A stretch of DNA of 64,000 nt from positions 30,814,001 through 30,878,000 of the forward strand of contig OZ004607.1 in the NCBI GenBank assembly GCA_963924565.1, read 5' to 3'. The position numbers and the translations under genes are program-made. Position 1 is the first letter of the stretch; each line of letters opens with the position of its first letter. Shown in pieces: positions 1-53,453 of this stretch. The notes under the pieces were generated by a model. It saw nothing but the letters and a program-made list of their open reading frames with translations. It was not told the DNA's origin and ran no database searches. The stretch is from Ascidiella aspersa (Eukaryota).

Positions 1-214
1 TCTCTCTACGTCCCCTGTAGATATACAATTATACAATTATACATATCTTCCTATTTCTGTCAACTTATTTCTTGGTCTCTTCTTATAGACATATTATTAT
101 CTTTTGCTTGACTCCCACCGTTTTTCTTCTCAACGCTTTATGTTTCCATGTTTCCTTCTTCTTTATCTACTGTATCATAATCTGATCGAATCTTTAACGC
201 TTTACGCCATACAG

Positions 215-10805: not shown

Positions 10806-10928
10806 AAGAAAGTCGGTATCGACCTTGAAGAATCGGCCAAGGTCACTGAGTCGATCCAGAACGACCAAGGTCACAAGTTCACCGTCCCGAAGGGCATACG
10901 CCCCCTGCTGGCCAAACACAGGGTCGAG
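10806..10928 (+). CDS. OTOF: otoferlin exon, phase 0-0 (NAGNAG acceptor 10805/10808)
   Basis: cgtag|AAG...GAG|gtgagt; ...FTVPKGIRPLLAKHRVE, matching the ferlin VP.GIRP.L.KYRVE motif. Confidence 0.93.
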
Positions 10929-13022
10929 GTGAGTGTGCTCTGATTTCTATGAGAGGCCGTTGACATTTTTAGAACTTAATAACTCAGCCTTGTTTAAGGC
11001 ATTGCTTTCACAACAGCGTGATATGACCAAGAAAAGCTGGCTGGACAAATGTTATTGAATTAAATATTCGTGTTGTGTATGGTTGACATTCACGATATAT
11101 GGAGTAAGGATAGCACGCAGGAAGTATATATTGAGCCTTACGGGCATCACCATAGATCTGTTAATTTGAATAGGTTTGTTAACATCTTTACCACTTTTCG
11201 AAGTTTTCTTTTAGCCTTTGTCTCGACAGTTGTTTTTTCTCAAACGTTTTACCTCAAATTGCTTGATCCAGCATTATTTTAGATTTTAACGTTTTACTCG
11301 GAAAACGCAACACGCGATATGTAGGACTACAACGCAAGAGTACAGTCCGGTTTAGTTATTTGATAAACAAACACGCTTCAGAATAGTTCTTCCTTTTTAA
11401 TCTTGGTTGCTAATGAATTTGCAATAAAGAGCTGCAAATTATGGGGTTAATTCTTTTACCAAAGTTAACTTTATGTTGTATGTGAACTTCAAACAATTTC
11501 AACAATTGAAAGGTGTTGAAGCAGAAAAAATCTCAAACCTAGGCCTACTATTAATAGCGGTAAAATAATTATTCATTAACAATTATTAAAATTAAGGATA
11601 CTGCATACACCCTTTTCTTCTGTTTTTGTTTTTACCAAAACACGAAGCAGTATTGGCGCTTTAATGAACGAAGTAGAGTTTGCAAACGTTTGTTGTTATT
11701 TGTGTCATCGGCTTTAAACAACAGATATCATAAAATCATTGGTTGTTTATATTGTTTAAATATAAACTGATTAAGAAAAGGTGATGACACTCGGCCTGAT
11801 TGCAGAAATACATGTACATTTAAAATTTAGAATTACACAATCTTGAATTTGTTTCCGTCCGCCATTTTGCCCTACATTGCTCGTTGCCCGAACAATCAAG
11901 TCCACAGAACTGCTTTATTCACTTTAGAAAAACATGCACTGGCCACTGTGCTGTGTGCATGACAACAAACACTCACACACATTCACATGCTACAAGGGTG
12001 ATCTTGGCAGCACATGTTAAATGCTATCGTCAAGGCACGCCCAAACATTTTCAAAAATCGACCGCAGTCCATTTAAAACTGCTGTCAGTTGTAGCGATTA
12101 AAGTCTTCGAGTTTAATCCTGATTTTAACGATGTTTAGTAGCTGAAGTGCAGGCGTCTCTTCAGGATTGTGCGGTCTGAAAAAAAATAATCTCGTAGATG
12201 TCCTCCTGACCCAATTTTGTCGTACATGAACGCCTGAGTTTTTTTAAATGGTGTATTATCTATTGAAGCTTAATAGCTTTTTACAGCAGTTGTCACGTGT
12301 TTAACCCTTCCTGTTCGCCTTCATTGAAAATGCTTAACTGAACTAGCGATTTTGTGTTCACTGGGTTGCAGGTGCCGCGTCTCTTTAGCAGCACACAAAT
12401 GCCACATACCTTCCCACGCAAACAACGGATTTTCTCCTCGTACGCGCAACGGCTCTTAGATAAAAATCAGTTGTTGGTAACTTGGGGTGGTAAGGTCAAA
12501 GGGTCGAAAGATTTTTATATCGTTATAACATGAAATTAAAATTCGCGTGAATTGTCAAAGATTCAAATTTTTTTTTAGAATAGGATAGCAAACTAATATT
12601 TCGGTTACATTGTTGTTAGGTTGTCCTCTGCATCAAAATAAAACGTAGCGGCAAAATTTACTATAAAAGCTTGTTACTCAATTAGGTTAACTGGGTGCAA
12701 ATAAAAGTTTGTCGTTGCCGAACAAGCGAGTTGCGATCTATTTCTGGAAATCCTCCAGCCCATGCAGTCTGACGTTATTTTATTGTTCTTTGTCCTAACT
12801 TAGCGTTTGCTTTCTCAAATCTCCTCGTAAATGACCGCAATCTGGAAAATGCTGCTAACATTTATTAGCGTAGGGATATCCGCCAATATAGTTGGTTATA
12901 ATAATGGACCTCGTATAGCCTTCACTCCAGATAGATTCGTGGACCTCTGACCGGTCCTACAACCATCGCATGTGCTGCTGTTTGTTTGCCAAACAAAACG
13001 GAGGACTGCACAGACTTGCACA

Positions 13023-13171
13023 CTATTGCGTTCGGATGAGCGATTCGTAGAAGTACGTCCAGCAGTTGCGGTGGTCCGGGTGCAGCGCTTCTAATTATAC
13101 ATAAAATGGCTTTAACGTGTGTTTCGCAAATAACGCATTACCGAGCGACGAGGTGGCGGACGGTGCTTTGC
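13023..13171 (-). CDS. orphan terminal exons (13171-13142 and 13090-13023) of unknown gene or NTL1 isoform
   Basis: aag|30 nt|gtaatg, 51-nt intron, attag|exon; the phase-1 frame GKAPSATSSLEALHPDHRNCWTYFYESLIRTQ* has strongly G/C-ending codons; AATAAA at 12866-12861. Confidence 0.5.
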
Positions 13172-15815
13172 CTTTGAAATGGCAGGTGTCAAGAGATTAA
13201 TTATACAGGACCACTGAGTGACTGGCCAAATGTTTTTGCGTTGTACTATAGTTGTTCGCCCCTTTTACATAATTCCTGGCCGGTTCAAGCTCTTAAACAA
13301 CTTATCCGTCTGTGCTACACAAAACAATTGCTTAGAGCTTAATATAGTCTATATAGACCGATTAATGAGTTTCTGGTCAAAATGTTATTTTGTTGAGCTT
13401 TAATTTTTTGACACTTTTCTGTCTTTCAAACTGCAATCTTTCATGAACAACTGTTTTTTTGACAAGCATCCTAATAAATTAACCTCTTGTTTTCCATTAA
13501 ACTAGTGCCCCCCACACACCTACCAAAGATGGGTCACTCAATTTTGGCCAAAACTTCTAACCGATCTGAAATTGTAAAGAAGCTTTTCAGATGTGATGCT
13601 TCAAAATGATATACTCTTTTCACGGTTTGTTTTAATGTAATCACAAGGTGTTGAGCAGACGCAGTTGTTATCAAGGGCAATCGGTGTGTTGCGCAAGCGT
13701 TGGAAAACCCCGTAAAGTACAAGTTGTCGATTGTAAGGCCTTCGCCATCAAATCGTGTGCTGAAGTGTGTTTACAGCCCGAACGCCATAATCGCCCGGCT
13801 TGATATTCTGGCGAATAGAATCTTAATCCCAATCACCAGCGCGAGGCAAAATCATTCGAAGGTCGACGCCTTTTCTCGTGACGAGCAAGTTTATTGGGTC
13901 GACAGTGAGGGCACAATAAATGAAAGGGCGAGACTTTTGCTGATTGGAAACGATAAAGGGCGAAAGCAACACACAACGGCTGCGGCAAGCCAAAAAAAGC
14001 ACTTTTGTCTAATCTCTGTAAATGGCAAAGTAATCTCAGCGAAACGCTGGCATATCTGGCGAACAAAGATCTTGCAATGCAAAACTTCATAAATTGGTTT
14101 CAAAGGCTTTTGATTTGAGATACCACAACTCGGGGCTTAGTATTGATATAGAATGTGTTTTCATTAAGGCCAATGTATGTTGGACTTTTTGCTGCATAAC
14201 TATCGTACCGTTCGTACTCCCTTGTGCATGCGCAAGTTCTTAAGGCAGAATAAAACGATAACGCAAACAAGCATTAGGCTGCCTTGCATTAAGTAAGGAA
14301 CGATAAAAGCACTTGCACCGATTATTATGCGCCACTGCTATGAGTTTGTTTACCAGGCAATCGAAAGTTACGATTTTTCGTTGAAATGTAAATGGAACCT
14401 GGCGTTCATTCATAAAGACATACAGAAGGAAATGACCAAACAACAGTGAAAAAAACTCTTCCAAATTGTCCTTGTGCATCACAAGTGAACATAGCTTGAC
14501 TTTTTGGGTGTTACTAATGAAATTTCCAACTACACGCTGTAGTTTTGGAGACTGAGTCCTTTATTTGACACAGTTTTCGACGTTGGTTATATTGGTGGCC
14601 AACAACGCCTCGATATAAAGCTTTAGAAAACCGGAGAAATCGATGTGAGTCAATCACGAAACCGATTAACGACTTGAAAGTTGGCCAGTGCATTTTTGCG
14701 GTAGTTCGAGGCATAATGCCAGATTTAGATCCGAGGTCCTGCGCGCGCTTGCAACTTAAATCCAATCCCGCCGGATTTTATGTGTACGAGAAAGCAGGAA
14801 AGCGAGTCGTGTGATGTGGCCACAAACACCGTTTTGCAGCAGGTTTGCAAAACAGGTTGGAATTTATAGACGTTGTAGCAACGCGACCACCCAGCTAGAG
14901 AGATGGTCCACTGGCGTGCCTCGCGTGTCAATGTGGGGCCCCACACGTGCTATATCTTATCCATATTAAACACAGGCGTATTCGGTAATGTGTTGCTATT
15001 TAAGGCGATTACGTTTGAAGAAGTGTTACAAACGTTTGTCTCTGTGGATAGACTTTTTTAACGCAAGTTTTGGACAAAGTGCAGCACGCCCTTAAACAAC
15101 ACTATAAGCATGTACGTTGAAGCTGGAAAATAAAACAGTACACGATTATTCAATACTCCAATCGCAAGCATTTGTTTCAATACTTCAATCGCAAGCATTC
15201 ACACATAAGGAAAAAATCATAGCGGTTAACATAATCATAGCAGTTAACATTTTCGAGCGTAGCTCACTGGATTGAAAATGCGAACAGTTAAAGATAAGGA
15301 TTGCGCAAAGTCATGTACCAGGCACTCGGCTGGAATACGCTGCAAGCTATACGTGGCGAAATATTCAGACAACGCCGGGTTTTTATTGCTCGTCCATTTC
15401 TGCTTGAACCGGTTGACTTTACGCGGTGAAAAATTCTGCACGATTCTGGCTTGGTTAGTGTTTTGAGTGCACATATAGAGAGACGCCGGCTCCAATTGGC
15501 AGCATCATATCACAACAGGGTTGATATCGTAATTCCGTCTCTCGGCTGTGCGTCGCACGAACCTGCCTTATGACGTAACATGTTGCGTTGCGATTGCGCA
15601 ATATCCCCAAAGCGATCGGAACGGACCGTTAGTGTTCCTCGTCCTTTACGCGACGCGCAAAGTCTTCTTCTCCAATCTTGGCGGCCGAAGGCAGGAAAGC
15701 TCTTCCGCTAAAAGCTTCGTCGTCATGGCGTCGTCAGGCTCGCACGGTTGCCTGGCAACTGTGGTTGCGCGCGCAGGCAGTCTGGGGCGCTGCTGTAGCT
15801 TGGATATTTGCGGCT

Positions 15816-16124
15816 TCAAATGTACAGCGAGCAGGACGAGTTGAGCCGTACCCAGTCGTCGCAAACGTAATGCATCTGCTTGGAGTCAAACAGGCGACAG
15901 TTGCGATACTTGCCGGTGCCCTTGATCAGCTCATCGTGCGTCAGCGTGAATATGGCCTTGTGGTTGCTCTTGGTTATTCTGCACTTACCGGGAGGGTGCA
16001 TGTCGAAGACCGGCTGCTTGTACTTGCACTGGCCAACAAAGAAGAACTGGTTCATGCCGAACATCGACAGCAGGTTGACAGTTGCGCCCGAGCGGCGGTG
16101 CTGCGCCGTGGTGGGAGTGAGAAC
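15816..16124 (-). CDS. NTL1 exon 3: neurotrophin/Spaetzle-like cystine-knot domain, stop
   Basis: cttggcag|GTT; VLTPTTAQHRRSGATVNLL...NQFFFVGQC...PGKCRITKSNHKAI...DWVRLNSSCSLYI*; AATAAA on the minus strand near 15387. Confidence 0.85.
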   Translation of the reverse strand, partial: VLTPTTAQHRRSGATVNLLSMFGMNQFFFVGQCKYKQPVFDMHPPGKCRITKSNHKAIFTLTHDELIKGTGKYRNCRLFDSKQMHYVCDDWVRLNSSCSLYI

Positions 16125-16128
16125 CTGC

Positions 16129-16389
16129 CAAGATGAAACAGCATTCGATTGAGACAAATGTCTAAACTCGTGTCACTTGTAAAATAACCTTAGATCCGAG
16201 GTCATTATTAAAAAATTAAAGTATCTGACCAAACAATTTACTCCCATAGTAGGTTAAGCTATCAAGATGACACAGCATTCGATTGAGATAAATGTCTCAA
16301 CTTGAGTCACTTGAAAATAACCTTAGATCTGAGGTCAGGTTTAAAATGTAAAGTACCTCACCAAGCAAGTTACTACCATAGTAGGTTCA
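16129..16389. repeat. tandem duplication with 134-bp period
   Basis: caagatga(a/c)acagcattcgattgaga...ccatagtaggtt occurs at 16129 and 16263. Confidence 0.9.
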
Positions 16390-17210
16390 CCCGTATGCAC
16401 AGGCGCATTGTGGATAAAAACACTTTTTTAGAATCTAAAAGTGATTCGTTACACTTGATGGTGTTTTATTTTGTAAGATTTTGCTTAGGGTGCAAACGAA
16501 TTTTCCCCTTACGTTTCATTAAGCGGCGAAAGAATAGCAAACCCTTTTACGCGATTGTTGATTGAGGTGAGATAAAAATCAAAGTAGAATGACTTTTCCA
16601 GACGTCGGCAAACTGCGGCACTTTGAAAAGGTTTTTGTGGCTCTTCTATTTGAAGAGTAAAACCAAATATGATAGAAAGGTGTATGGTTAAACTATTTTC
16701 ATTTTATCTTGGACTGTTATTAATAATTTCGATTAAAAAACAGTGTTCTTCATTAAACACCCGCGTTAAACCTTGTAAAACATGGTTTAATTATTTGAAC
16801 TTTATTGAAACTTGTAAACATTGCAGTGTTACTGCTTCAAAGAACCAACATATATTAATAAATACTGTTCATCATTTGTTACCAGTGTTTCGAAAATTAT
16901 GTTGTTGCCTTCACAGGCCACTCTCACGTGATAAAACAAACTAACTGTTAATTCCGAAATACTTCTATCCATTTTATACGGGTCTTAAAACTTTTGGATT
17001 TTAAAGTGCGGCTCGTGTTGGATAATAGTTGACCCACCCCTGGTCTACACCATATGCTTGTACAGAAATATCGTGGGGATATAAAGAAAACAGACAAATT
17101 CCTAAAAATCATAGGTGATACTTTTATTAAATTTAAAGATAAACCAATTGCGCAATTCTTTGCCAACTCAGCACGCGTCGTTACCAGAAGTCCAGTACCA
17201 ACTGTTTAAA

Positions 17211-17530
17211 CAAGTAGTTCTCAACCGGGGTGCCGCGGCACACTATGGTGTCATTTTTAACACTCAAAGGCGCCGAGAGACATTTCAAATCCTTTAGAAT
17301 TGCAATTTTTGCTCTATTGGTAAACTTCTTGATACAATTTTTTTTGGTAACGATCATAGTGCCAATAATTAAAAGGGTTTGTCAACCTTGTTGTACAGTC
17401 AATATGCTGTTTCAATCTCGCTTAATGTAACGTTACAGTTAACCAATCAGCAAAAATACGAACAAGGGTGCTGCGAACTATTTATAACTTTTGTAGGGTG
17501 CCGCAAGCAAAAAAAGATTGCGAAATACTG
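17211..17530. mobile_element. degenerate Charlie-like MITE in NTL1 intron 2
   Basis: caagtagttctcaaccggggtgccgcgg ... gggtgccgcaagc...ttgcgaaatactg. Confidence 0.55.
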
Positions 17531-17560
17531 GTTGTAAACCCTTTTTTCTGTGTTTCATAC

Positions 17561-17737
17561 CGTGTACAACGTCGGGCACACGGCTTGCTGCCTGCGTATT
17601 CCCCTGTAGCTCTTGACGATCGGTACTCTGGACTCTGCCATCGGGTCCTCAGTGCTGTTTATGATTTCGTTGCGTTGAGCAAACCTTCCCCGGTTCTCCG
17701 TCAGAAAGTGGAAGAGCACTCCGCTTGGGTCACTTAG
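17561..17737 (-). CDS. NTL1 exon 2: pro-region, RGIRR cleavage site, first knot Cys
   Basis: gctttaag|CTA...ACG|gtatga; LSDPSGVLFHFL...KSYRGIRRQQAVCPTLYT; 177 nt, phase 0-0. Confidence 0.85.
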
Positions 17738-19013
17738 CTTAAAGCAAATTAAATCGTGTAAAACTTTGACTAAAAAGAAGCTGGCAAAAAACTTGTGCTA
17801 GACGCTAAATTAGCGTTGCAAGCGGTTTTAGATGCATATATCTTTAGTAAGTCAACATACCGATAGCCCTTTTAGTAAGTAAACTTCAGTTTAGTAAGTA
17901 TATCTTTAGTACGAAAACTGACAAAAGGGTCTTTTAAAGCGGTCGAAAGAATTGGCTTGGACCGCGAGTTAAAGTGCGTGGAACTTTTGTAAAATACGAA
18001 CAGGTGACGCTTTTTCGCGCCTTTGAGACATTGATAGTTTACGGAAGTTCTGTCTACATTCCAAACTGCTGTAAATGAAGATACTAGCTCGCAGGTGGAC
18101 GCGAAATATGTAGGCTGGCGTATCGAATTCGGATCAGATATGCATGTAAATATTGCTGGACTTGTTTTCACGGTGGTGCAGTGTCTCTATAAGCAGTTCA
18201 CTTGGGTGCATTGCCCAAAGAAGGCTTGGATTGTGATGCCTTGTTTTTCTGGTTTAATTTTTTTATCTAATCTGTTTACTTAAAATGATCAGTAGCCGTA
18301 TCGTTGTGAAAGTGCCTTTGGGCCAGGTTATGTTTGCTGTGAGTTTCACGCGTTGGTCAAGTTTTGGGCGTTTTCAGCTCTGTGCTGACCAAGTTTAACG
18401 GCTAATTAAACTGATGTTAAAATGTGCTAAACTCAAATATTGACTGGGGGTGAACGACCTGTTTCTCTCCAAATGTGTTAAGGCTATTAGCGCTTCTTTA
18501 CCGGTTAATACGTCGGTGTAACCTTGTTTATATGCTGTGTTATGCCTGCGGCGACTAGCAGCGAATAGCGTCGGTGCCTCAGCGGTAGGCCTACTTAGCG
18601 GAACTGGTATCCATGTCATCAATAAAGATTACACCTGTACTACTAGTAATGTGTATTGGGGTTAGCGACTACAGGCTAAAACTTTTTTTGGATCCACGTT
18701 ATTCACGAGTTTACTTCGTACTTTCCAAGCAATAACAGGTCGTTTTCGAAAACACAGCAACAGACTTATATGGAGACATAGTAATGATATTGGTCAAATA
18801 AATAAATGCAACTATAACTGCTCATTAAACACTGCTAAGATTGTCACCATGTGATAATAGCCATTGCTAAGTACCGTTATGTGTGCCAATCAAAAAATGA
18901 AGTAACAAAATGGTAAACAAACTAAACTTGCAAGCCCAAATAGTAAGGACAGGCTTTTAAACGACTGCAACTACAATTACTATAAAAGAGCGAAAGATGT
19001 CTGGTAGACCAAC

Positions 19014-19256
19014 CTGTTGCCAAGGCGCGGGCGTACACTTGTTGTTGAGAAAGAAGAACGCCAGGTCATCAGTCCTGTTTTTGCACGAGGGTATGCAGCT
19101 GTTGCACAGCAGGAAATTGAACAGGGTACTTGTGTCCGAGCAGCGACGTAGGCACCGCCGGCACTGGTCGTTGCTGCTGTGGTAGCCTTGTGAGCCCATG
19201 GCCGATGACGTCACGAATGACGTCAGGGCGCATGCGAGGCCCAGGATCGTTCGCAT
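19014..19256 (-). CDS. nested gene NTL1 exon 1: signal peptide and Cys-rich pro-region
   Basis: acaATG MRTILGLACALTSFVTSSAMG then CRRCLRRC-x11-CNSCIPSC; ends CAG|gttggt; 243 nt, GC3-rich. Confidence 0.82.
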
Positions 19257-19312
19257 TGTGACGACGCGTCGACTTCGCCGGAGTCCATCGGAGGCTGGCA
19301 GCAGTAATACTT

Positions 19313-19319
19313 CCATATA
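19313..19319 (-). promoter_or_regulatory. candidate TATA-like element of NTL1
   Basis: TATATGG about 63 nt upstream of the ATG at 19256; imperfect consensus. Confidence 0.35.
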
Positions 19320-21868
19320 GCGCTTTGGTCTGGTCGGCGGTTTGGCAGATACATAAAGAAGAACGCTTTGTCAGGTCATTTGTTCGGCTCCTTTACTTGA
19401 ATAGTGCCCTAGTTTTTCTGTACCTAAAGCCGATTTCGCCTGTAAAAGAAAACAACTCATTTTTTTAACATTTTTTTAACATTTTTAGCACGGGTGGCCA
19501 TGGCGTATGCTTCAGCAGTGGCACTTAACACTTATACTGTATTTTAATGGCACATTATACGTCAGAGCTGGAAAAGTTAAATACGTTTTCAGAAAAAGAT
19601 ACGCCAAATTTCAAGTGATTCATAGAGTAGAATATAACAAAAATTTAAGCAACTTATAACTAGTTTTTTAAACTGAGAAAAAGTTTTACTGAGATTACTT
19701 TTATAATCTAAAACATAAAATAACATAAATCATGGAAATAAAATAATTTAAAACAAAGCAATAATTTATTGACTTTTAAGCGTCTTCTTTAAACAATATA
19801 TCGCAATACTTGGTTTGTAAATATACAAATATGCCCAAATTGTCATACTTGAAAAACGTAGGTTAATGTTTGTGCGGCGAATCTGAATTGAATGTGAGAG
19901 TACCGAAACATATTTTTTTCAAAATATTTACTTTTGAGAAATGAAGTTGTCTGTCTTCAACATTGCGCAACTGCTACCTTACTTACGATATAACTGCTCG
20001 CATAGGACGAAATCGGGCAGAACAAGAGCAAAAACCAGTCGTGACTGTTTGTTTCCTAACTCTGTTATCCGAAATTCGCCCTACTCCGACGGAACAAGCC
20101 AAGCCACAGCAATACAATTACAGTCGTTCTTAATGCCGCCTATTGTTTTGCCAGTAACCACTCGACAGGAATTTAACCTTTGCAGTTTGTTGCTGTTTAT
20201 GGCGAGTGATCCTGCAAATACGCATATACTTCAATACGACACGCCTTGTCTCTGGAATGGAGAATCCGCCGCAGCTATGCTGTTTTGTTGATACATTTGA
20301 AATGTCTTTAACTGATTGTTTTCGTTTTTTCGTAAGGAGATTAGCATTAGAGCTACTCAACTGTCACAAGAAGTTTCGTGGATGTGCAAAACCACAAAAT
20401 GGCCACCAAGTCGCACTGAAACCTATTTAATTAAAACAAATCCGGGCCAAATCGGGATTTGCTTGCTTAAGCTTTCAACGGTATGATTAAGAGATGTTGA
20501 TCGACCTTAAAATGACATCAGCGCTTATAATATTGCTGTATCGGCCTGCTGCTCTGATCTATTTTTTCTCTTTTTCGTACAAGTGCACTGAGCTTAAAAG
20601 TTTTTTGAAACTTGGATCACAACGCCCTTTTTTGTTGAATTAAATCAGCTATTGACTAACGAGGATGCGGGCAGTTTAAACAAAAAATGTTCTATTTTCC
20701 TGTTTTTATTTCCCATTTAAACTGGTCCTGCCAAACTGTCTATTTAGTCTAGTTCCCAGGTCTGGAACCCTCCTATAACTCCGTGGCATGTTCCCGGCAT
20801 ATTTTCTTGCCATTATTACGCATAGGACAACGTAAGCGCCCGGCTACACTGCCACCGCAACGTAACTAAGAAGCGTGGGTGAAAGCAACTAGCAAGGCCA
20901 TCAGTGTTAAATCTCACTACCCGCCCAAGCAAAGACAAGCCTTGTGCAACTGCTAAACGGTTGCTGTGTACACTTTCTCACACAGCGACTGAATTCAACA
21001 TAAAACCTCCTATCAGAAAATGTAGACAAAATCCGGTCTCGCATGTATGCTGCGAAAGTCGACACCTACTAAGCGAAGTGCCGCAAAATGAGGAAATGTG
21101 CCCAGTATCGCTTCAACATTATACGTTCGATTAAATTATTGGCATAATGGTCGGCTCTCCTGACAGACCTGTGATACCGCGACGGGAAAAGTTGCAATTA
21201 GGCGACGAAAATTTCCAGCACGTCTAACCATGCGTGTCGTTTAGTGGTTAAAATCTGGCGGCGAAGTAAAGACAGGTTTAAATTAAATTCGCCACATTGG
21301 AAAAGTGTACAGATCACCTTATCAGGGCTGACATAGAATTCAGATTAATCATATATAGCATAAGGAGTTGAGGCGAATTTTGTGTCAACTAAATCCGGTG
21401 AAGACGAAAACTGTCGGTTGAGGTTTTACGGCGAAAGTTGGACTTTACCGGATTAAACTGCACGTGTGCATTCTTTGAAATCCAAATTTCTTCAGGGGAA
21501 ATTTTTCAGAGCTTTGCGGGCGTTTTCAATTCGCGCCCTTGTGTTTTGGAAACGGGCAATTGATTTTACTGTTTATCTGCTTGCGTCGACGACAACTGCA
21601 GAGATAGACCGCAGGCCGTATTGCCCCACAAACTTGACATTCGACAGCCTTGATAAAGACGCGTGGGCAAACTGGCAAACAGCAAACTCGGCGCGGACTT
21701 AATTGATTTTACCTGGTGCGGTTCCAAGATCTGTACCCTGCTGGTGTCGATCCTGTAAACACTGCTGCGCTGAGAAGGCGAAGGCCCACTTGCCTACAAC
21801 ACTGGCAAACATACTACAACTATGTACGGGATAGGATTGAGGGATTGTGCAAACCTGGTTCACATGCG

Positions 21869-22100
21869 TTAATCCAGGAGGAAATTCCCTGCATTACACA
21901 CAATTTGTTGCCGGAATAAACTCGCTTGCAAGTACGCACTTCGCCTGGGTTTGAGACAAGGCACAATGTGGTCTTGATGTACCCTGTGAGTTGGTACACC
22001 ATTTCCTTGGTATGTTAATAAGCAGAGCACTCGGGACAGGTCAACAATTAGTCTGAAAGTTTTCACCTAACGTCAAACTTTTTTCCAGTTGTAAGCCTGC
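21869..22100 (-). mobile_element. possible decayed gypsy-type pol C-terminal fragment
   Basis: VKTFR...LTY...HRVHQDHIVPC resembles the post-integrase SH3-like motif. Confidence 0.3.
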
Positions 22101-25100
22101 GCGAATATGAACGTGGTGGACAGAATAGCAATTCTTTCTATCTGATATCGTTGCGGTGACTGCACCCCACCGAAAAGTAATTTAGGATCCATCTATTTGG
22201 CAACTATTTTAAGCTTTAATTAAACCTTCGGCGCTGACTATTATGAATGTTTTGTTTAACCAAAGTGGAAGTATAAGCTTCCATTTGATGCCAAGCGGAG
22301 GATAATAAACTGGAGTGTACTGGTTTTCCAGGTTACTCAAGTTCCTTTTAAACTTAAAACCGCTATTTTTCCATCTATTATATAAATATCACCCCAAAAC
22401 AAATCTACATAAAAAAGAAACGGCGTTCCTTAATAAAACTTCTTGAGTTTTTAGTCTGTGGCTTGATACCAGTTTGTTTTGGACAGCAATATTCCGAGAA
22501 CCAAAAACGCGCGTATGACACCCAGCGAATTTTTATTTGCCCGTCTCATCTCAGTTTGCCTTGATAGGATTTTCACTCTCCAAACTATTCTTCTAATGCG
22601 GTTGTCCCGTGACAGCGTGTAAGCAAAACCAAAAAATGCGACTATGTGTTCCGATTTCGTGTGACCATTGTGGTCGATATAAACAAATTATTAGCGCTTT
22701 AAAATCTGTAGCGTTTAACCACCTATAGTTAAACGTATGTGACATCGTAAACGGGCGATCATAACTGTTTTACCCCCAGATATTTAAAAAATCATTATCT
22801 TAACCAGGTTTTTTTTTAAGGTTTGGTTTGGGTGACCGCTAAGTAGTTTTAAGAGACCGCACGTGTTTCATTTAAATACCAAAAAGTTGCAAGTCCAAAA
22901 TTTGGGAAACCGCTGGAGAAATTTGGGGGACCGTTTCGGTCTAGTTCGATCCTTTACAAGTTCGATCCTAGTTACCTGCATATATTCACACGCTTTTGTA
23001 TTAAAACTACAATATGACAAACTACATCAAGGCAAACACTATAAGCAGTTGGGCAAACATGCCCGGTAAAAAGCCTGTCAATATGCTTTTAATCTGGAAA
23101 GTCGACCTTTCACCAATTATAGTTCCTTAATCATCAAAATACTATGTAACGGAGATTATTATTCTTGGGTGAACATTCTCGAGCCTATCCAAGAGTGTTA
23201 CTGCCAGGAAGATAAAAATGATTCAGTTATTTTTTTACCTATATTTACAATTTTATAATTGTCTTTTTACGACTCAAAAATTTCCCTTTCTGATACGGGC
23301 GAAATAAACTTGTAATTCCTGTTTTATTTTTAAACGAAAATTTAAAACATTTGTTTTGTAACATTAAAAAAAAATCTTTTTTTTATGCTTTTTTAATTTT
23401 GACTTGTTGGGCATTAAAACGTTTCGAAAGATTACACTTTAAAAAAATAGCATATGATAGAAATATTGAGCCGACTTGTGTTGTTTTGATCAGCTTAATC
23501 AGCTACATGCAAACTTTAAGAACCTGTCCTGCGAGTTTTAGGCTAGACTCATTTTCGCTGATATATTTTATCTTTTCTAGCTACATGCTCTAAACCACTG
23601 GCCTTTCTGCATTCCGTGCTACAGTTACGTGGACGTACAAATTTGAAGGAGGCAGCAATGACAGTACATAAAAATATGGCATATTTGTAATTTTATTTAT
23701 CAGCTAGTACATCTATTCTACTCCATACACTGTAAATAAAAACCGTGAGACTTTCCACCAATGAAGGTGGGCCCCTTAAAACATCCTATAGGATGGACTA
23801 GCAACACCTTTTTAAATCACAGTGGATCTTTCCACCCTAATGTTTACCACAAAATGTGGTGGAAACTTCAACCATTATTGTAAACCCATTTCGTAGTAAT
23901 TATCGGAAAAACAATTCCAACTCCGTTTTCCTCTCGAGCTATGCGCACTGGTCTGTTTTAGATTAAACGAATTAGAACAAGTTTTAAACCAACAAGGTTA
24001 ATTTTCCTCTACTTTACATTACGGATGTAATAACGTATTGCTGGTCAACTTTGGCACTTGGAAACTACAATGTCTGCCCTTTCTGATATCTTTTCTGATA
24101 TTGCTTACTCTTTGACAATCTAAGCGAAATATTGCTGTTATTTATTAAGCTCCACTGGGCGTTAAAATCTGAACTTCTTGGCGTTTGCGAGAACCACAAA
24201 TACACACTTCGTTGTTACCGCGATAAAATAGTATCACCCTATATAGGTACCACGACCTTAGCTTAATTTGACCAGGAGCGAACGTCGTCGCGCTTCATCT
24301 AAACGTACTTGACTGCCTGTCGGTTGTTGTTTGTCTGAAAGGGCAAGATATTGCCAGCAGCAATCTGCCTGCTAATATCCTGCCCAAGCCGCCGATACAA
24401 GCCAAAAGTCCGACGCAGATTTTTTGGCGGTCGAAAGATAGTGCGATTGCGGCGGCGCAAGTCCAACATTACCTTCTGACCCTGTTCCTGCTTCGCGGCC
24501 AAATCCTCACTCGGTGCCATCTCTAACTACAAACAGCGGTCCTGGCTGCCCTGGGTTCGAATTCTTTTGGAGTCAACTGCGTATAGACGAACAACAGCGT
24601 TTTGACTCGTGGGGTGGTTTACGCAACATTTTACAGTTCGCATTCGGTTTAGGTTTTGTGCGACGTTATAAAGAAAAAATCAGATGAAATTGTAGCGACG
24701 GGGATAGTGCTTGTATTAATACGGCCAATCAAAGTAAAGCTGTACTCATGAGCGTGACAAATTTGATTAGATACATTAACGATCTAGTTGCATTACTGAC
24801 ACTCTACCAAAATCACCAAAATCCGAACGTTCGTCTTCAAACAAGGCCGTTATGACGCTGGACGCAAAATGAATTTGCGCCGTTTGCGCACCTTGTGGAA
24901 AACCCCCAAACGTCAAGGGTAACTCAGGGCGTGATGACGTCAATAAACCGTCAATTTTGGATTCGACGGCTGCTGCTCCCGGAGAAAAGTGTTTCGCTAG
25001 TTTGCTGATGCGTATTATGTATACCTATACAACTTATATAAGGCCCCGCTCGTGTATAGGTTTATTTATAGAAAAAACACGCAGCCGATCGCACGTTAAA

Positions 25101-25898
25101 GATCGCTATCTACAAGACGTACTCTTTTCTGACATTTTTACAGGAAATAAGTGTTTCTATACCTCGTATAGGCGCAAACATCGCCCCGGTTGCAAAAACG
25201 ACGCCCGATATTTCGACGTCATTTGTGACGTCATCCTATCAACGCTCAGTCGACTAAGCTCATATTTCGGCGGATGATCCGCGCTTGTTAAAAGGCGAGC
25301 GGCTCCCGTCGTCCACAGTCCATGCTTTTCGGGTCCTATAAAGACTATAACAATGTCTACACTTTAGGTGGCTTTAACGCCGGTAGCAGCCAGATTGGCT
25401 ATATACTTGTCTGTGGAATCTTTGCCTTGTCATGTAGAAAAACAATAAGGCTTACACAAAAACGCAAGACTGCCGAACCTGTTTAGGCAACAACATTGTA
25501 ATGAGTGTTTTGATTAGTTCGGACTCTTTTTAGGCCGCTTTTGATTTCCTGAGCGTTTCGTTCTCGGCGTAAAAACAGGCTCATCTTTCGCTTTGGCCTC
25601 TTGTAATATGTTTACACTGCGACGCTCGTTAAATCTGCCTAAGAGACGAAAAGCAATGCAACGCTGGGAAGCTCCCGCCAAAGATTACGATCTGGTCTGC
25701 GCTTTTTGTACGGCGAAGAGGGGGCTTTCCGTTGAAATCAATCCCCTCGGGTGCTTCTTATGATTAGTATTTCGCGTGTGACAAGATATATGGTATAGTA
25801 GGGTGTCGTACTAGGCCTTAAAAAAGCCGTCTGTTCGTGGTATTTCGCTATAATTGTTACTCGATTGAAGATTAAATTTTGTCCGAACCTAATGATGG

Positions 25899-25961
25899 AT
25901 ATAACGGAGTGTTGCTCTTCCAGCAGAATATATATATATGAAGAGCAACACTCTGTTATAT
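25899..25961. repeat. 22-bp inverted repeat (hairpin) with (AT)n loop
   Basis: atataacggagtgttgctcttc / gaagagcaacactctgttatat, one G-T pair. Confidence 0.85.
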
Positions 25962-28900
25962 AATATGCCTGGCAACAATAGCTTATCTAATGATGGATAT
26001 TATACACTGGTTCATTCTGGAGGTCAGATTTTTGTAGCAACTTTTTCTTTGGTAGCGCATTTTGCTAACCAGTCGACGAACCAGTTTTTAGATTCCTGCT
26101 ATTTGCAAAACAACAACCCGTAACCGCACAATATCCATACACCAATTTTGCTCGTTGATGCAACCGCTGTACATTGTTATTTTCAGAGACAATTTACCAA
26201 GCGTGAAAGTCCCCCGATAACTCTAAGGACCGTATATCGTCCACGCACCATATATTTCTTCTTTTGAAACGTTTGAACTAAATGGAATTTTAGCTGGACT
26301 CGTCTGCAGTGTAGATGGCCTGAAACGCGCTAATTTATTCGCAATTACCTTTTTTGCGTAAGTTTTCTTTTTTTCATTTGTAGCGCACGTCATTGTTATT
26401 GGATTGAAGCCTGTAAGTAGGTGTTTTCATGGTTTTAATCCACGATAATGGCGTCCGTATAAAACATATATGGAGCTTGAGCAGACACATTCGACGGATG
26501 GTACCGTGTTAGTTGAACGTGTAAATGGTTTGCAGTATATAAAGGAAACTTGGTCAACTAAACTAAAAACGTTTTTTTTGTCCATTTGTTTATGTATCAC
26601 ATTGATGAAACACTCGTCACACGACACATTTTATAACTTTTTTTATCAGAACACCTACTTTGGCAAAGTGAATTAATCTTTAGTCTTCAACGTCCAAAAT
26701 CTAGCCACCATCGTTGAAACCTTAAACTTTAAAGCCGTGGTTCTTCAAATTCAGCATGATGTTCTTAAAAAAAGAAATTAAAAGCTGGGGTGCAGCGGTG
26801 GCGATCAAGTGCTGATTACACAATCTCTCTTGTAGCTGTGCGCCTTAGACGGATAAGATGTTGCTCGTCGATTTCGGAGGCTTTTACCGTACGATGAATA
26901 CCTTTACTGACGAAGGTTATTCTGTTATAACAAGTAGCAGCCTTCTATGATCGATCGATCGGCCTTCGCTTGGACCTTAGATGCCAATCATTTTTTTTTC
27001 GCCTCACCGACCAATTATAACACGCCAGGCGCCAGTTTGGCGTTTTCACAGATCCGAAAATCAAAAATAGTATCAGGGCGCCTGTTTTCTCCTATCAATG
27101 CAATGTATTTTACTTTATCACTGCCACATCATCGACCCGAAGCGTTTTATGGGGGGATATTTGTTCGACCAGAAAGCTTACGTGTACTGCGTTGCTTAGA
27201 TCCAAGGTTTCTTGTTAGTCATACCGTCAAAGGACACGTTAAATTTCATATATTGCAATGCTTATTCATTTAGGATTTTAGGTTATTTTTATGACTCTGT
27301 GGCTAAAATGATGACGCGAGTAGATCAGATGAAACATCAACCTCATGAAACACTTACGCGTATATTCCAACTTTATTCAGCAGACCTACAAATTAAGGAT
27401 CACGTTTCCAGTTCAAACTGTTAAACAGTGTATAAGAAACCGAAATATTAAAAATCAGATGCTAAACGGACTCGTGCGTTAAACAATTTTCTGCCAGACT
27501 TTTTTATAATTCATCACGAACAAACCGTCAGCGGATACATAGATTTAATCAAGTTTACGTTGCGGTTAAGGGGGTTCGTCCAGTATAAACCAGTATAAAC
27601 ATAATCCGAATACAATCAAAACTCATTTTTTTCTATAAATAGACACAGAAATTTCCCAACAGCCAGTTTTAGTGCTTGATGACAGCTTGTATGAATCATC
27701 CGCTTTATTACGGCCGGCACATGTGCATTTACATAACTGAGTATTCGCGGCACTTTCGCAGTGCTAAGCCTTGGACAAGGCCGCTACTGTTGAGCTATTA
27801 ATAACTCAAGCAACTCAAACTGACGCCGAAAATATTCGTGAAAAAAATTCGGGCTGTAAGCGTTTGAAATATCGGTGGGTTATATTTTAGCTTGTGTACC
27901 TAAGAACCGGAATTATTTACAAACTAATACAAATTATTATGTTAGATTAAATTTGTCGCCAAACTGTGTCACCCTGATTTTAAAATGCAGAATTGCAGAA
28001 ATACGGCTATCAACCTAGAAATGCGTTGAGAAACTTTTACCACACACGCATGTTACCATAAACATTCAAATTCGCTGTTAAATGAGTGTTTATCTCTACT
28101 AAAGACATCCATTAAAAAGACTAAGAACGTGGTTTTTAACAGTTAATAATTATAAATTGTTTTTTGTTTGTTCAACTTAGGCATATTCGATTGAAATATT
28201 GTTCTTCGCGACGAGCTCCACCTGGTGGCCAAATAATCGCCTTAAAAACTCTTGAAAACGCTCGTTTAGAAATAACCCAGTCTGATTTATATTCATTACC
28301 TAATGACATCAAACTAACTTCGTGACTGCACCTATCTGTGAAGGTTTGGGCCACTTAATATTCACTTTCGAAATGCAATCTAGTGTTGCAGTGCTGCACC
28401 GGCTGTCAATTAGCGTTAATTACTTCAATTTCGCCGAGTAGTACAAAACAGCTAAACCCTGCACTTAGTTTGACAGGCGCCAATTATCCAATGCTCCTCG
28501 TCTGCAGAGGGATGTTGAATTTACGAGTGACCACCAGAGAAGGCGTACTGAGATGGCGTTCAATTCGAAGAATTATTATTTTTTTCAAAATGGCGGCTGC
28601 GCGTAACCCGACTCTCATGGGAAACAGCTTGTGTTTCAATCGTCCAATATGGCTTGGTGCAAACCTACGCGCAGTTCTGTTTACGGTTTCTTGGAATATA
28701 TGCAGTACTCTCTGTGCTTTTCTGCTCTGGGTCGCACGGTTTGAAAGAAGTTTAACAATGTTATTTATACTGCTACACAAAATCTGCAGGTTATCTTTTG
28801 AGATGGAGACCTAACACTCAAATATTAATATACTTCATCTTGTCATAAAAACAATTTTAGCGACACATATGTTTTCGGTTTAAGTCTCTGAGGGTCCGTT

Positions 28901-30249
28901 ATTATAAATTTTTCCATCAGTATTACAAACCATATATAGCATACGTTTTCGTACGGTATCAGGTTTTAAAAATTCATCTTTGTCCCTTGTAAATTAAAAA
29001 GATTAAAAAACAAAAAAAAACAGAGACAAACAATTTCGGTTGTTCGGCTCTGTTGTAAACGGAAGCGTTTTTCATCTTTTTTCTACCTAACGGCACACCT
29101 TTGGACTTTTAAACCTGGCAACACACCTAACGAGCTAAGTGAGCTCTAATTTTGTTTGGACAGAACGGTATTTTCCTTAAACACGTTTTTTTTGTATTTC
29201 GTATATAGGGCTCATAGTTCTTTACATTTAAATAGCTGTTGGATGAATAAGCTAAGCCGAGAGAATGTACAAAAGGATAAAAATGATATATTTTATATTT
29301 TAAAATATTTTTCCTCTTGCCCTCGGCGCACCTGGCAATATTCCATGGCGCAACGATTAAGAAGCGCTGGTATAGTTTATGGGACCTATCGTATCTCTGA
29401 CACATCTGACAAGACGTAATGTCAAACACCACAATGCAGTATCCGAAGTTTTTTGCGCCCAGGCGGTTTTAAAGATTTATCTAACGTAAATAGTTGTAAC
29501 ACGATATTTATCTTCAAAGACATTTTTGCATACAGTGCTAACCGTATAGTTGATAACCGTTTATGACCGTAAATTGAATCGCGTTTAGGTCTTACTAAGC
29601 TTCACACAATTTTTACACAACAAGAAAATGCTACTACCTAAATTAAAATAAGACAAACCAAATGCAAAAGAAGAGCAATCCCTTTGCACTTTGCTAAACA
29701 CCCTTTACATTTTCCGAACACTTTGATTTAGTGCCAATATACCGGTTTTTGCGTCTTCCGGAACAGCACGACTCGAGGGTCTTTTCGTATAAACACGGGC
29801 TTTGCGAGCGAAATCTTGTTCAAAATTGTCATCGCGGTCGCTTTATCACCGTCTGCCATCGGCCGAGACGAAGTTGCCTGCATGCCAATATGCCCTACGT
29901 CGACTTCACGTGGCTAACGGCTGACGAGTACGTTTCCAAGTCGAGACTATCGCGAACGCCAATCGCGCAGCCATACCCCGGAGCTGTTAATTTTTTGCAA
30001 AATCCGCTGTAAAGCGATTTTGTCGAGACGCTTTCTTAGATTCCGCTCAAGCGATACTCTGCTGCCGATTAGGTAACGCACGTATTTCGTTGCGAAATGC
30101 AAGGCTTCAGCCGTTTTTTTGGTCCGTCGTTGCCATATCTGTGTCCCACAGTCGGGTAGCTTACCAGTTGACGGAGCTAAAACAGTGCTCATGTTATAAG
30201 CCATGCCCTTGGTAGGTAATACTGTTTCCAAGAAAATTTATTCTTTCTC

Positions 30250-30550
30250 AGTCGCAATTGGAAATTACAATTCCTATTCTATCCAATACCTTCAGAGCAA
30301 ATCCTGATATATCCTTTATCTAAATTAAAACTGCTTAAAAATCAAAAACAATTATATTATTCTGGTGCTGATTGCTAAACTGGTGGTCTCACACTCCATT
30401 GCTGACAGATGCCTAACACCATTCAACAAGAAATTCCATCTATTTCAACCCTTAACTGCCTTCCCAAAAAAGTCAAACTCTTATTAGGACATTAAAACTT
30501 GTCTAACATTCTCAATACTGACCCGAGCATGCTCGTCTAGATCCTTACTG
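30250..30550 (-). mobile_element. decayed LINE (CR1/L2-like) reverse transcriptase fragment
   Basis: FLGRQLRVEIDGIS resembles the FL..R.QRV.I.G..S RT motif; surrounded by stops. Confidence 0.45.
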
Positions 30551-31689
30551 AGCGCGTACCAACAGATGGCGTAAGTTAACAAGGCAACTTATCACCAACC
30601 AGCAGAAGGCAGCTCGTCCCTATTTAACAACAGCGCACACGGGCCGTCTGCAGGCTCCAGGGCTCGACCGCACATCAGGCCCGGAGCGCAATCCTAACCT
30701 CTGACTTGAAATGTGCAGCGGCGGGCGCGAAAATCGTGCGATAACAAACGAAGTCTCTTGTGCTCGCTGGCGACATCATAATGCCAGACCGGTGGCCAGG
30801 AGGGTGGGACGCAGGTGGCATCCGTATCTGAATGGACTATGCTGCTCATAGTTGTCCTATCGTGCCCTTTTTGTCAAATTCGGCTAAGTATAGGAGTTGG
30901 AAGTTGGTACTATACTGTCGAAATTATACAATGCTCAGGAACCCTGAGTGTGTGTATACCTAAAACAAATGCTAGACTATTGTAAGAAAATATGCCTCCC
31001 AAGCGGTAACCATGCCACTTTTAAACAACATAAACGCCAAACGGATTTGATAAAATTTTACATTCCAATTGCTTATTTCTTTTGATATTTTTAAACAAAA
31101 CAAACATAGTGTCGAAAACCGAGTTTCGCTTATTTTTGGCGGCTCACCTTTTATGACACAACTCTCGAACGCACAAAAGGAACGCCTGCTTTCTTTTGCC
31201 AGTAACAACAAACGGCTAAAAAGTACCCCGCGATTGGGCCAAAACCTCGGGGAAATTTGGTCACGTGATCACCACAGACTTTCGCTAGTCAACATAAACC
31301 GGACTAAGCGGCCCTAAACCGCTGTAGCTTCGCGTTCTTTCGTCGTTTTCTCCCGCAATAATAAGCCCTCACAGCCGGATTAAGATCTGCCAAGGCAAGA
31401 GTGAAACCGCACCGTCAAAACACGTATTTGGCCAGTATGCAGCCTGGAAAACCCGTGTTGAAAATCAAAAATGCATTTTACAGGGGATCTGAACTCATTA
31501 CTTTTCTTGGATCCCGTTTCTGATTAGGCCTTGTAGTGAATGGATTTATAGAAAACATAGTCTCCCTGCTAGGAAAAGCGCTAACAACATGTTCTCTCTG
31601 GTGGACTTTCGGTTTACTATCAGTTTTACATTGGTTGCACTTTTGCATTACTATTAGGGACAACGTGCATTGACCTACATCGCCTAGTG

Positions 31690-32179
31690 CAGCGGTTCTT
31701 AACCTATGGGTAATTACCCACATGTGGGTAATTTCAGTATATCAGGTGGGTAATTATAGCTAAGCCAGAATATTTAGAATTATGGCTGTAACAAACAATG
31801 TCACAGCTGTAAGTGGTAAGTTGCTTTATTAGTTACACTTTTTTGTTTTGAGTCCTTTTATTTTTAAAACAACCAAACAAGCAAAAGGAAATTTTATCAT
31901 TTTTACAATTGGTTCGTCCTAGTGATCATTTTTGTGGCCGGTTTTACGTATATGTGACCTAATAGTAAGATTTTTCTTGTATCCGCTAACGGCTATAGCC
32001 TAGCTATTTTTTCATAATCAGTTTGCTGTTAGTGTTTATTTTTAAAGGTATTCTTAGTGGAGTTGTTTACAGTAGTACACAGTAGCTGTAAGTTTGCATT
32101 GGATAAAATTAGATTTTGCTAATGCGACTTTGATCTGCACAGAAATGGGTAATAAGAGAAAAAAGGTTAAGAACCCCTG
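31690..32179. mobile_element. hAT (Charlie-like) MITE
   Basis: TIR cagcggttcttaacct / aggttaagaacccctg; TSD gcctagtg / gcctaatg. Confidence 0.85.
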
Positions 32180-35100: not shown

Positions 35101-35505
35101 TTAAGACGGGTTGGTGATGCTTACCAAGGCGCATTAATTAATTTTCAGGATTTTACACATTTTTTCTTGAATCCTTATTACGCCTTACATTGGCACTTAA
35201 CCCTTATTAGGCATGTGTAAAAATAACTCGACAAGGGCGCTTGGAAAAGTAATAAAGCTGATCGGTTGCAATCGCCATTGCGGTTCAACCGCCACTCGGC
35301 GGGTTTGTACAACCATATAAATCTAAATTTTTACGGCGAATCTCTTGGCTCGCTTGGGTTGCTTCGGAGAAAAGTGCCACCTGGGTCGATGAACATTCAT
35401 ACAAAAAACAGCTTTCAGCACTTGGAAAAGTGTAGCTTGCGTCATCTCACACACACCCATTTCACTTCAGTCAGTCGATTGTCCCTTTGACATTGTTAAG
35501 CGTTT

Positions 35506-35745
35506 TCAGCACTTCGATTTGAAGGAAGCCGGTATTTTAAGAGTGCAAGCCCCTGGGAGGACAACCGACTCCTTACACCTTACCAGGTCTGGGAATTTGT
35601 CCAGGGTGGTGCAAAACCTGGGGTTGTTCCTGGGACCGTCTCGTCGCCGCACCACCCAGGTCTGGTGCTTATGGGGCACGGTCTTGCAGCGCCCAGGCAG
35701 GTTGAACCGCGGTGAGGCGTGAGTGCACGAGCCGACTTGGAATTG
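35506..35745 (-). CDS. NTL2 coding exon 3: remainder of cystine-knot-like domain, stop
   Basis: tttcgcag|CAA; QFQVGSC...PGRC...C-x11-C-x9-CTLKIPASFKSKC*; Cys spacing shared with NTL1. Confidence 0.85.
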   Translation of the reverse strand, partial: QFQVGSCTHASPRFNLPGRCKTVPHKHQTWVVRRRDGPRNNPRFCTTLDKFPDLVRCKESVVLPGACTLKIPASFKSKC

Positions 35746-36070
35746 CTGCGAAACAAGAAAGTGAAGATTGTTAGCGAAATGTTTTAATGGTTGCGGATAA
35801 TTTACAATTGGGGCCAAAAAGTGCCAAAGTTACATTCGGGGTCGTTTAAAATGTTATGCGTTTTTCATCATTTTATTTCTAAGTTTTTTTATAAACTTGA
35901 ATTTGTTATGCAATTTCTGACAAAATACAGCCTCGTGCCAAAGTGTTGGTATGTTTTACCGTCCTATTTCGATTTTGTTGACATCAAGTCCTGTGGACTT
36001 GAATTATCCTTTATATATGATGTAAGTGATTAATCTGCATGATTTTTTCATTATTTAAAAAAATACTTAC

Positions 36071-36142
36071 ATCAAAGCCGGGGAGAAGTACAACGGTTTC
36101 GTTGGGGTAGAACGCCGACATCGCGGTTGGTTCCGTCTTAAG
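36071..36142 (-). CDS. NTL2 coding exon 2, phase 0-0
   Basis: ttttccgcgcag|CTT...GAT|gtaagt; LKTEPTAMSAFYPNETVVLLPGFD aligns with NTL1 VLTPTTAQ...TVNLL. Confidence 0.85.
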
Positions 36143-53300: not shown

Positions 53301-53453
53301 TACTAATGTTGTCATGATAAGCTAAATTTGGTTTCCTGCGAATATTTCTGCCAGGGATTTTTTCGTAACTTAACTCGGACATTTCGTGAGAACTAATAGT
53401 ACCCAAAAATACCTTTGAATTGATTTAATTTGTTCAGCGGTTTTTCTTGTTTC

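Follow-up and report, generated by a model that had tools for sequence, protein, structure and literature searches.

Two tandem genes in a ferlin intron

We analyzed a 64,000-nucleotide stretch of the Ascidiella aspersa genome (assembly GCA_963924565.1, contig OZ004607.1, positions 30,814,001 to 30,878,000; hereafter the window, to whose numbering coordinates refer unless another contig is named) and describe two tandem genes in it, NTL1 and NTL2, whose products are probably distant relatives of the neurotrophins. The window is free of assembly gaps, has a GC content of 39% and is eukaryotic in character, its exons being short. Both genes are on the minus strand and lie antisense within a single large intron of a ferlin gene, between its exons at 10809-10931 and 50228-50398. 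Reading of the window frames drew attention to an open reading frame (ORF) at 15819-16172 (-) that terminates ...VGQC-x14-C-x27-C-x11-C-x9-CSLYI-stop, and when the six frames of the window were scanned with a regular expression, only one further such cysteine framework was found, at 35509-35829 (-). The gene models built around these two ORFs are given in Table 1. Their six splice junctions are all canonical AG/GT and phase-compatible, every exon is open, and the GC content of the exons is 56-59% as against 39% in the window. Secretory signal peptides are shown in the ORFs of NTL1 exon 1 and NTL2 exon A.

Table 1. Coordinates of the NTL genes and of their host gene in the window (a slash marks an exon/intron boundary)
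Feature	Position	Strand	Description
NTL1 exon 1	19014..19316	-	putative; signal peptide MRTILGLACALTSFVTSSA and Cys-rich N-terminal pro-segment (7 Cys); donor CAG/gttggt
NTL1 exon 2	17561..17737	-	pro-region, basic site RGIRR, QQAV-Cys1-PTLYT; acceptor tttaag/, donor /gtatga
NTL1 last exon	15816..16124	-	neurotrophin-like domain, VLTPTTAQH to CSLYI and stop; acceptor ttggcag/
NTL1 Cys2-6 codons	16028-16026, 15983-15981, 15899-15897, 15863-15861, 15833-15831	-	
NTL2 exon A	38289..38426	-	Met, signal peptide (MCITKIIALTVVILASGIDA), short N-terminal stretch, Cys1 (38306-38304), PTTFE; donor /gtaagt
NTL2 exon B	36071..36142	-	24 codons LKTEPTAMSAFYPNETVVLLPGFD, no Cys; phase-0 acceptor ccgcgcag/ and phase-0 donor /gtaagt
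NTL2 last exon	35506..35745	-	QFQVGS-Cys2 ... Cys6-TLKIPASFKSK, Cys7, stop
NTL2 Cys2-7 codons	35727-35725, 35688-35686, 35613-35611, 35577-35575, 35547-35545, 35511-35509	-	
Ferlin gene	10809..58085 (plus FerB exon 1136-1486)	+	Pfam FerB E=2.6e-23; tblastn to Clavelina ferlin locus, 80-90% identity
Ferlin exons	10809-10931, 50228-50398, 53738-53899, 58032-58085	+	

In NTL1, the Cys1 codon (17578-17576) is in exon 2, which terminates ...RGIRRQQAVCPTLYT/gtatga and is spliced in phase 0 to ttggcag/GTT at 16124; the exact acceptor position of exon 2 in Table 1 is the probable one. NTL2 exon A likewise terminates shortly after Cys1 (...YITPCPTTFE/gtaagt). Because the codon of Cys1 falls late in a separate upstream exon, the first intervals of the two frameworks, x37 and x35, exist only in spliced form. 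An exon-by-exon count reproduced the spacings given in the preliminary description of this DNA, namely C-x37-C-x14-C-x27-C-x11-C-x9-C for NTL1 and C-x35-C-x12-C-x24-C-x11-C-x9-C for NTL2, with the correction that in neither gene are the six cysteines in one open frame. The range assigned there to both genes, 15816-17580, holds NTL1 from Cys1 to the stop codon but not NTL2, which lies 20 kb away at 35506-38426. The count of six cysteines stood for NTL1, whereas in NTL2 a seventh, the last residue (35509-35511, -; ...SFKSKC stop), had been overlooked. This terminal Cys7 is unpaired and is missing from the orthologue in Clavelina lepadiformis; it might link two chains into a covalent dimer.

NTL2 exon B is the counterpart of the first quarter of the NTL1 last exon (VLTPTTAQ...VNLL), as matched by eye; a MAFFT alignment set the end of so short a sequence in the wrong place and was not used. 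NTL2 therefore has one extra intron. Its product is a 149-residue pre-protein without a pro-region. For NTL1, the start codon is ATG 19316 or, more likely, 19256, and exon 1 corresponds to an ORF (19316-19014) that lies about 1.3 kb upstream of the Cys1 exon and has a phase-0 donor.

A family of tunicate relatives

The last exons of NTL1 and NTL2 align with five cysteines in register (BLASTP E=3e-7). A profile of these two sequences, searched against 1.84 billion representative proteins, retrieved 11 relatives with E values from 3e-20 to 6e-4, all of which have the same cysteine framework; the family is real and more than a chance resemblance. The named relatives are all ascidian and are annotated as 'uncharacterized', namely Clavelina lepadiformis XP_076803755.1 (P0004, 154 aa) and Styela clava XP_039259313.2 (P0005, 411 aa). 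A family profile scored the NTL1 last exon at E=2e-41 and the NTL2 last exon at E=4e-19; the former is 45% identical to an exon of a metagenomic relative, L006 (E=1e-29), and the latter 35% identical to the exon of Clavelina P0004. A word-index protein search returned nothing for the NTL1 exon and only known members for the family alignment, and the ESM Atlas held no usable match for NTL1 or NTL3. These searches and the structure predictions below were run on full-length natural relatives (P0004 and P0014), on the single-exon NTL3 and on separate exons rather than on spliced NTL1 or NTL2 proteins.

NTL3 is a third paralogue, found in the same genome with the family profile (E=6e-10) at contig 8:11702720-11703091 (+), which corresponds to L014:1477-1887. 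Its domain is held in one exon that contains a basic RIRRRR site and all six cysteines. About 6 kb upstream, at ~C8:11696542-11696880, is an ORF that combines a signal peptide with Cys-rich sequence and may be the first exon of NTL3. A weak third match on the same contig, C8:11946456 (L003), is without two of the framework cysteines and was set aside as chance or a relic. A long open exon at L003:2347-3171 (contig 8, ~11.947 Mb, +) encodes FPWMK, a Hox-type hexapeptide, which suggests a Hox gene at a distance of some 245 kb from NTL3.

The most neurotrophin-like member, P0014 (RQYFYETPC), comes from marine metatranscriptome contigs (L018-L020, 29% GC) and AT-rich genomic contigs (L021/L022), and its source was probably a tunicate of the plankton, in which case the range of the family would extend beyond benthic ascidians.

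Conserved exon architecture

The exon layout of NTL1 recurs in its relatives. In L006, a Cys-rich ORF (L006:4041-4352) is found upstream of the NTL exon as well, collinear with that of NTL1 (E=3e-4), and an exon ending ...RPVCPTTYE stands between the two. In a Clavelina RefSeq gene of 387 aa, adjoining that of P0004, each of the three NTL1 exons has a homologue and their order is kept, and the stretch VLFHFLTENRGRFAQRNEI of NTL1 exon 2 is matched in it (E=8e-4). P0014 (329 aa) is encoded by metatranscriptome contigs of about 1.5 kb from three independent assemblies, which represent an NTL1-type mRNA with three exons; they fall into three blocks of 99-100% identity on a genomic contig (L021), where 2 kb separate the Cys-rich ORF from the NTL ORF. 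In this relative, exactly the NTL1-type architecture is spliced at the mRNA level. The comparison of the NTL1 Cys-rich exon with Styela P0005 was not significant (E=0.86).

The motif CPT(L/T)(Y/F/L)(T/E) ends precisely at an exon boundary in NTL1, NTL2, L006 (VCPTTYE) and P0004 (VCPTLLE). P0004 has the layout of NTL2, with a signal peptide and no long pro-region. Basic sites lie 4-9 residues before Cys1 in NTL1 (RGIRR), NTL3 (RIRRRR) and Styela P0005 (RRVKR/RRDRR). The N-terminal pro-segment of the NTL1 type is a conserved Cys-rich module, C..C...C...LC.SC...C...NKC, seen at 19014-19316 (-), L006:4041-4352, L017:13785-13916 and residues 45-100 of P0014, and no Pfam domain matched this module.

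In Clavelina, the orthologous ferlin exons enclose two NTL genes whose order and orientation are those seen here, and the tandem pair is therefore older than the split of the two species. The NTL exons of the two species are 26-35% identical, as against 80-90% for the exons of the host ferlin; the ligands evolve very fast, which is why annotation has missed them.

This divergence also has a bearing on the idea that, although the family is real, the copies in the window are decaying, non-functional duplicates or mis-modelled exons. Their knowledge from genomic sequence, the ORF of NTL1 exon 2 without a signal peptide of its own and the unpaired seventh cysteine of NTL2 fit such an idea, as does the low identity to the Clavelina orthologues beside the well-conserved ferlin exons. 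Against it stand the open exons with canonical, phase-compatible junctions, their raised GC content, the retention of all framework cysteines and core motifs, and the position of both genes at the orthologous Clavelina site, where RefSeq models them too. We regard this idea as very improbable.

Sequence similarity to the neurotrophins

The two-sequence profile returned only noise from the PDB. When a profile of the family with 13 rows (A5) was searched against 177,635 distinct PDB sequences, all 17 matches at E<10 were neurotrophins, among them NT-3 (E=0.0016), NGF (0.014) and BDNF (0.05), which supports the homology proposed in the preliminary description. Profile A4 gave neurotrophins in eight of eight PDB matches, and the family member P0003 alone in 12 of 13 (E<10). 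In Pfam, the NGF family (PF00243) matched P0003 with 19.1 bits (E=0.0015) and P0014 with 19.8 bits (E=0.0009), and none of the 13 members matched IL17 or Spaetzle at E≤10. A genome-wide scan with PF00243 gave nothing over the cut-off; a weak match at C8:11613901, inside a 978-aa open frame (E=1.9), was discarded as noise.

P0003 carries RQYFYETPC, to be compared with KQYFYETRC in NT-3, and the motifs TA.H/D..G..V.L, Q[YF]F, CKT....[KR]AL and W.R[LI][ND][ST].C are common to the NTL family and the neurotrophins. The family also carries the neurotrophin-specific forms Q[YF]F[YF]ET.C (in P0003), CKT..[HV][KR]AL and W.R[LI][ND][ST][SA]C.

Predicted fold and comparison with other cystine-knot ligands

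With the family alignment as input, AlphaFold2 gave a pLDDT above 90 over residues 50-154 of P0004 and a mean pLDDT of 85.7 for NTL3. The predicted models have an NGF-type fold with two pairs of long twisted antiparallel strands, in agreement with the elongated beta-hairpin fold expected for these proteins in the preliminary description; against NGF and NT-3 this double hairpin has Z scores of 9-10, much higher than against any other cystine-knot family. C3 opens the long third strand, the enlarged hairpin turn contains a short helix, C4 is on a short strand, and C5 is at the start of the adjacent last long strand. In Foldseek, the 30-odd top PDB matches were all neurotrophin/NGF chains, and coagulogen, IL-25, IL-17A and Spz1C followed from rank 32 on. 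VIA-align of the P0004 model gave Z 8.3-10.2 for neurotrophins (9.5-10.2 for NGF/NT-3, with an rmsd of 2.3-2.6 Å over about 90 residues), 7.8 for Spz1C, 6.6 for coagulogen and about 6.5 for IL-17. When 48,161 representative chains were searched independently of Foldseek, only NGF chains reached Z≥5 against the NTL3 model (9.3 and 9.1); coagulogen (4.8), IL-17A (4.5), PTTH (4.1) and Spätzle (3.9; 3e07) fell below this value.

These values bear on whether the family could belong to another branch of the cystine-knot cytokines, such as IL-17 of the '3/6-less' T1C type, Spätzle, Trunk/PTTH or a coagulogen-like protein. The basic fold is common to all these families, and against the P0004 model Spz1C reaches 7.8 and IL-17A about 6.5. 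Furthermore, IL-17 has the same superfold and an incomplete cystine knot in which the loss of a whole pair is tolerated, and invertebrate IL-17s of the T1C type lose the same 3/6 pair (PMC11087794), a precedent that the preliminary description leaves unmentioned. However, the PDB matches of the family profile are neurotrophins and none is an IL-17 or Spätzle, Pfam gives NGF only, the NTL3 model separates NGF clearly from IL-17A, PTTH and Spätzle, and neurotrophin-specific motifs are present. T1-type IL-17s are reported to have been lost in tunicates; there, as in vertebrates, T2 is the one type on record, and it is without the 1/4 pair but has 2/5 and 3/6 (PMC11087794). The NTL pattern, with the 3/6 pair lost, is the opposite of T2, and IL-17 differs further in showing no sequence or Pfam similarity and Z values of only 4.5-6.8. 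Spätzle, the Drosophila neurotrophins DNT1/2 and horseshoe-crab coagulogen are diverged ligands with an NGF fold that arise as pro-proteins and become active when cleaved, as may be so for NTL proteins too. Unlike the NTL proteins, they have a complete knot (with an inter-chain cysteine in Spätzle), and their Z values are 3.9-7.8 as against 9-10 for NGF, with no Pfam Spaetzle match in the NTL family. Thus, we consider membership of another branch unlikely and homology to the neurotrophins the better account.

Cysteine mapping and predicted disulfides

The HMMER alignments place the profile segment 'elCet' on 'SVCDS' of NT-3 (C1 = Cys I), Q.F...C on QYFYETRC (C2 = Cys II) and 'arCKtvktkHKAli' on 'SQCKTSQTYVRALT' (C3 = Cys IV; CKT..HKAL vs CKTSQTYVRAL), and Cys III of NT-3 falls within a neurotrophin-only segment that has no counterpart in the tunicate family. 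The VIA alignments pair residues 47..154 of P0004 and 6..136 of NTL3 with NGF 11..115. With the ends of these structural alignments assumed to be free of gaps, C1 (residue 51 in P0004, 10 in NTL3) falls on NGF 15, C6 (147 and 129) on NGF 108, and the leucine two residues after C6 on NGF 110, the position of Cys VI. The bridges of NGF (1BET) are Cys15-Cys80 (I-IV), Cys58-Cys108 (II-V) and Cys68-Cys110 (III-VI). The C-terminal W-V-R-L-N-S-S-C-S-L of NTL1 matches W-I-R-I-D-T-S-C-V-C of NT-3 position by position.

Across the family, the C-terminus of the domain reads C-x-[LVM], with L, V or M at the position of Cys VI, and the six-cysteine knot of the NGF family is absent from all 13 sequences. 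The terminal CxC of neurotrophins is replaced by CSL in NTL1, which ends C-SLYI-stop, and by CTL in NTL2 (C-TL), as had been noted. None of the 13 sequences has Cys III or Cys VI, and this supports the proposal that Cys I, II, IV and V have been retained and that III and VI have been lost together. The gain of a new pair, C4 and C5, described from the contexts RNC..YVC in NTL1 and RFC..VRC in NTL2, was likewise found, both in these two genes and in 13 of 13 sequences, and in the models the two cysteines lie on adjacent strands of the enlarged last hairpin. The framework is invariant in the 13 sequences, with a C4-C5 spacing of x8-17 and a fixed C5-x9-C6. From homology and parity, the predicted disulfides are C1-C3 (I-IV) and C2-C6 (II-V), and C4-C5 would form a local staple in the enlarged last hairpin, which the models fit. 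Because there is no closed ring for I-IV to thread without the III-VI bridge, the result would be an open, 'un-knotted' neurotrophin fold.

In our initial alignment by eye C3 was placed on Cys III, and this alignment was dropped when HMMER put it on Cys IV. A map with the same homology in which C3 is Cys III (PGKCR vs SGCRG), Cys IV and VI are lost and the orphans I and III pair with each other draws on the resemblance, again by eye, of NTL1 'PPGKCRITK' to NGF 'DSGCRGID' and of 'SNH...TLTH' to 'SKHWNSYCTTTH', and on the C2-C3 spacing of 12-18, which is nearer to II-III (9) than to II-IV (21). On the other side, the motif CKT....[HV][KR]AL, which is the stronger one, twice leads HMMER to pair C3 with Cys IV and to leave Cys III in the neurotrophin-only insert, and C3 opens the long third strand in both models, as Cys80 does in NGF. 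We consider this map unlikely beside the assignment of C3 to Cys IV, and the predicted connectivity (1-3, 2-6, 4-5) is identical under both.

A probable diverged branch of the neurotrophins

Taking these results together, we conclude, with a probability of roughly 0.8, that NTL1 and NTL2 are tandem genes, antisense in the ferlin intron, that encode secreted proteins with a C-terminal domain of about 105 residues which is a highly diverged homologue of the neurotrophins (NGF/BDNF/NT-3), and that they form a separate subfamily with NTL3 and the tunicate relatives. Since the Pfam threshold is not reached and the six-cysteine knot is absent, the family is better treated as a distinct, diverged subfamily than as a canonical member of the NGF family.

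Like NGF, BDNF, NT-3 and NT-4 (PF00243), the NTL proteins are predicted secreted pre(pro)proteins, in several members with a basic site a few residues before Cys I, have a C-terminal domain of about 105-120 residues with a predicted double beta-hairpin (Z 9-10 and an rmsd of 2.3-2.8 Å for some 90-98 residues) and keep Cys I, II, IV and V. Unlike these, they are without Cys III and VI and have a deletion of the stretch that surrounds Cys III (GCRGID...), and thus there is neither a ring nor a knot; they have an extra cysteine pair and a last hairpin about 20 residues larger. The pro-segment of the NTL1 and NTL3 types is Cys-rich, whereas the pro-domains of neurotrophins are not known to be so. 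In addition, the NTL proteins score below the Pfam threshold, their coding region is split by introns whereas a vertebrate prepro-neurotrophin is coded in one exon, and their host lineage is reported to be without Trk.

Several observations weigh against the neurotrophin assignment. The best Pfam NGF score, 19.8 bits, is below the gathering threshold of 27, E values against neurotrophins are modest (~1e-3), and the window exons alone gave no NGF match at E≤10 in Pfam and phmmer searches, only noise (HSP90, DUF4933). AlphaFold2 worked from alignments of no more than 13 rows, and NGF structures were already familiar to the network. The number of cysteines in NTL2 is odd. The join of NTL1 exon 1 to exon 2 in A. 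aspersa is a putative one that rests on homology, and the expression of NTL1 and NTL2 in this species is presumed. Finally, genome scans found no Trk-type LRRCT_2 domain (PF16920) or p75NTR transmembrane domain (PF18422) over the cut-off, these domains being short and split between exons.

If the assignment is correct, NTL1 and NTL3 would first be synthesized as pro-proteins whose N-terminal segment is Cys-rich, to be cut at RGIRR or RIRRRR by a pro-protein convertase, and NTL2 would be made without a pro-region. The mature proteins would act as secreted, probably dimeric, extracellular signalling ligands. Dimerization is suggested by the conservation of residues from the packing core of the NGF dimer, for example the Q-Y/F-F motif and the tryptophan that precedes the last strand. 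The receptor would be other than Trk, and Spätzle, DNT1/2 and coagulogen offer a precedent for ligands of this fold that have Toll receptors rather than Trk as signalling partner.

Ciona is reported to have no neurotrophin/Trk/p75NTR system (PMC2772990). We tentatively propose, at somewhat less than even odds, that tunicates never lost neurotrophins and that the NTL genes descend directly, by very fast evolution, from the neurotrophin gene of the chordate ancestor, having been retained by ascidians and by the planktonic organism, probably a tunicate, from which P0014 comes. The open framework of two bridges and a staple would then have arisen after the loss of Trk, with signalling through another receptor (p75/TNFR-like, Toll-like or other). 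If true, the family would be a natural experiment on neurotrophin action without Trk and without the knot.

More generally, the NTL genes represent a conserved, unannotated family with a probable neurotrophin fold in sea squirts, which among living animals stand nearest to the vertebrates, and they bear on the origin of neurotrophin signalling at the vertebrate base and on the receptor choice of an NGF-like ligand without Trk. An NGF domain without the ring-closing III-VI bridge and with a hairpin staple would be a natural test of the share of the knot in folding, stability and dimerization of cystine-knot growth factors. Textbook and genome-survey accounts deny a neurotrophin/Trk/p75NTR system in Ciona (PMC2772990), and the public annotation of the relatives reads 'uncharacterized'. 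A literature search, which was not exhaustive, found no NGF-type domain without III-VI and no tunicate neurotrophin, and an earlier description is possible.

Other features of the window

The plus-strand ferlin (FerB/C2) gene covers most of the window. In the intron just upstream of the NTL1 last exon, a near-duplicate of the acceptor region of about 65 bp was seen by eye (16262-16330 vs 16125-16196, -); the upstream copy reads ...catcttgatag and the used copy ...catcttggcag. An open frame of 167 codons at 15633-16133 (+) runs antisense to the NTL1 last exon and is most likely a by-product of the 56% GC of that exon rather than a gene.

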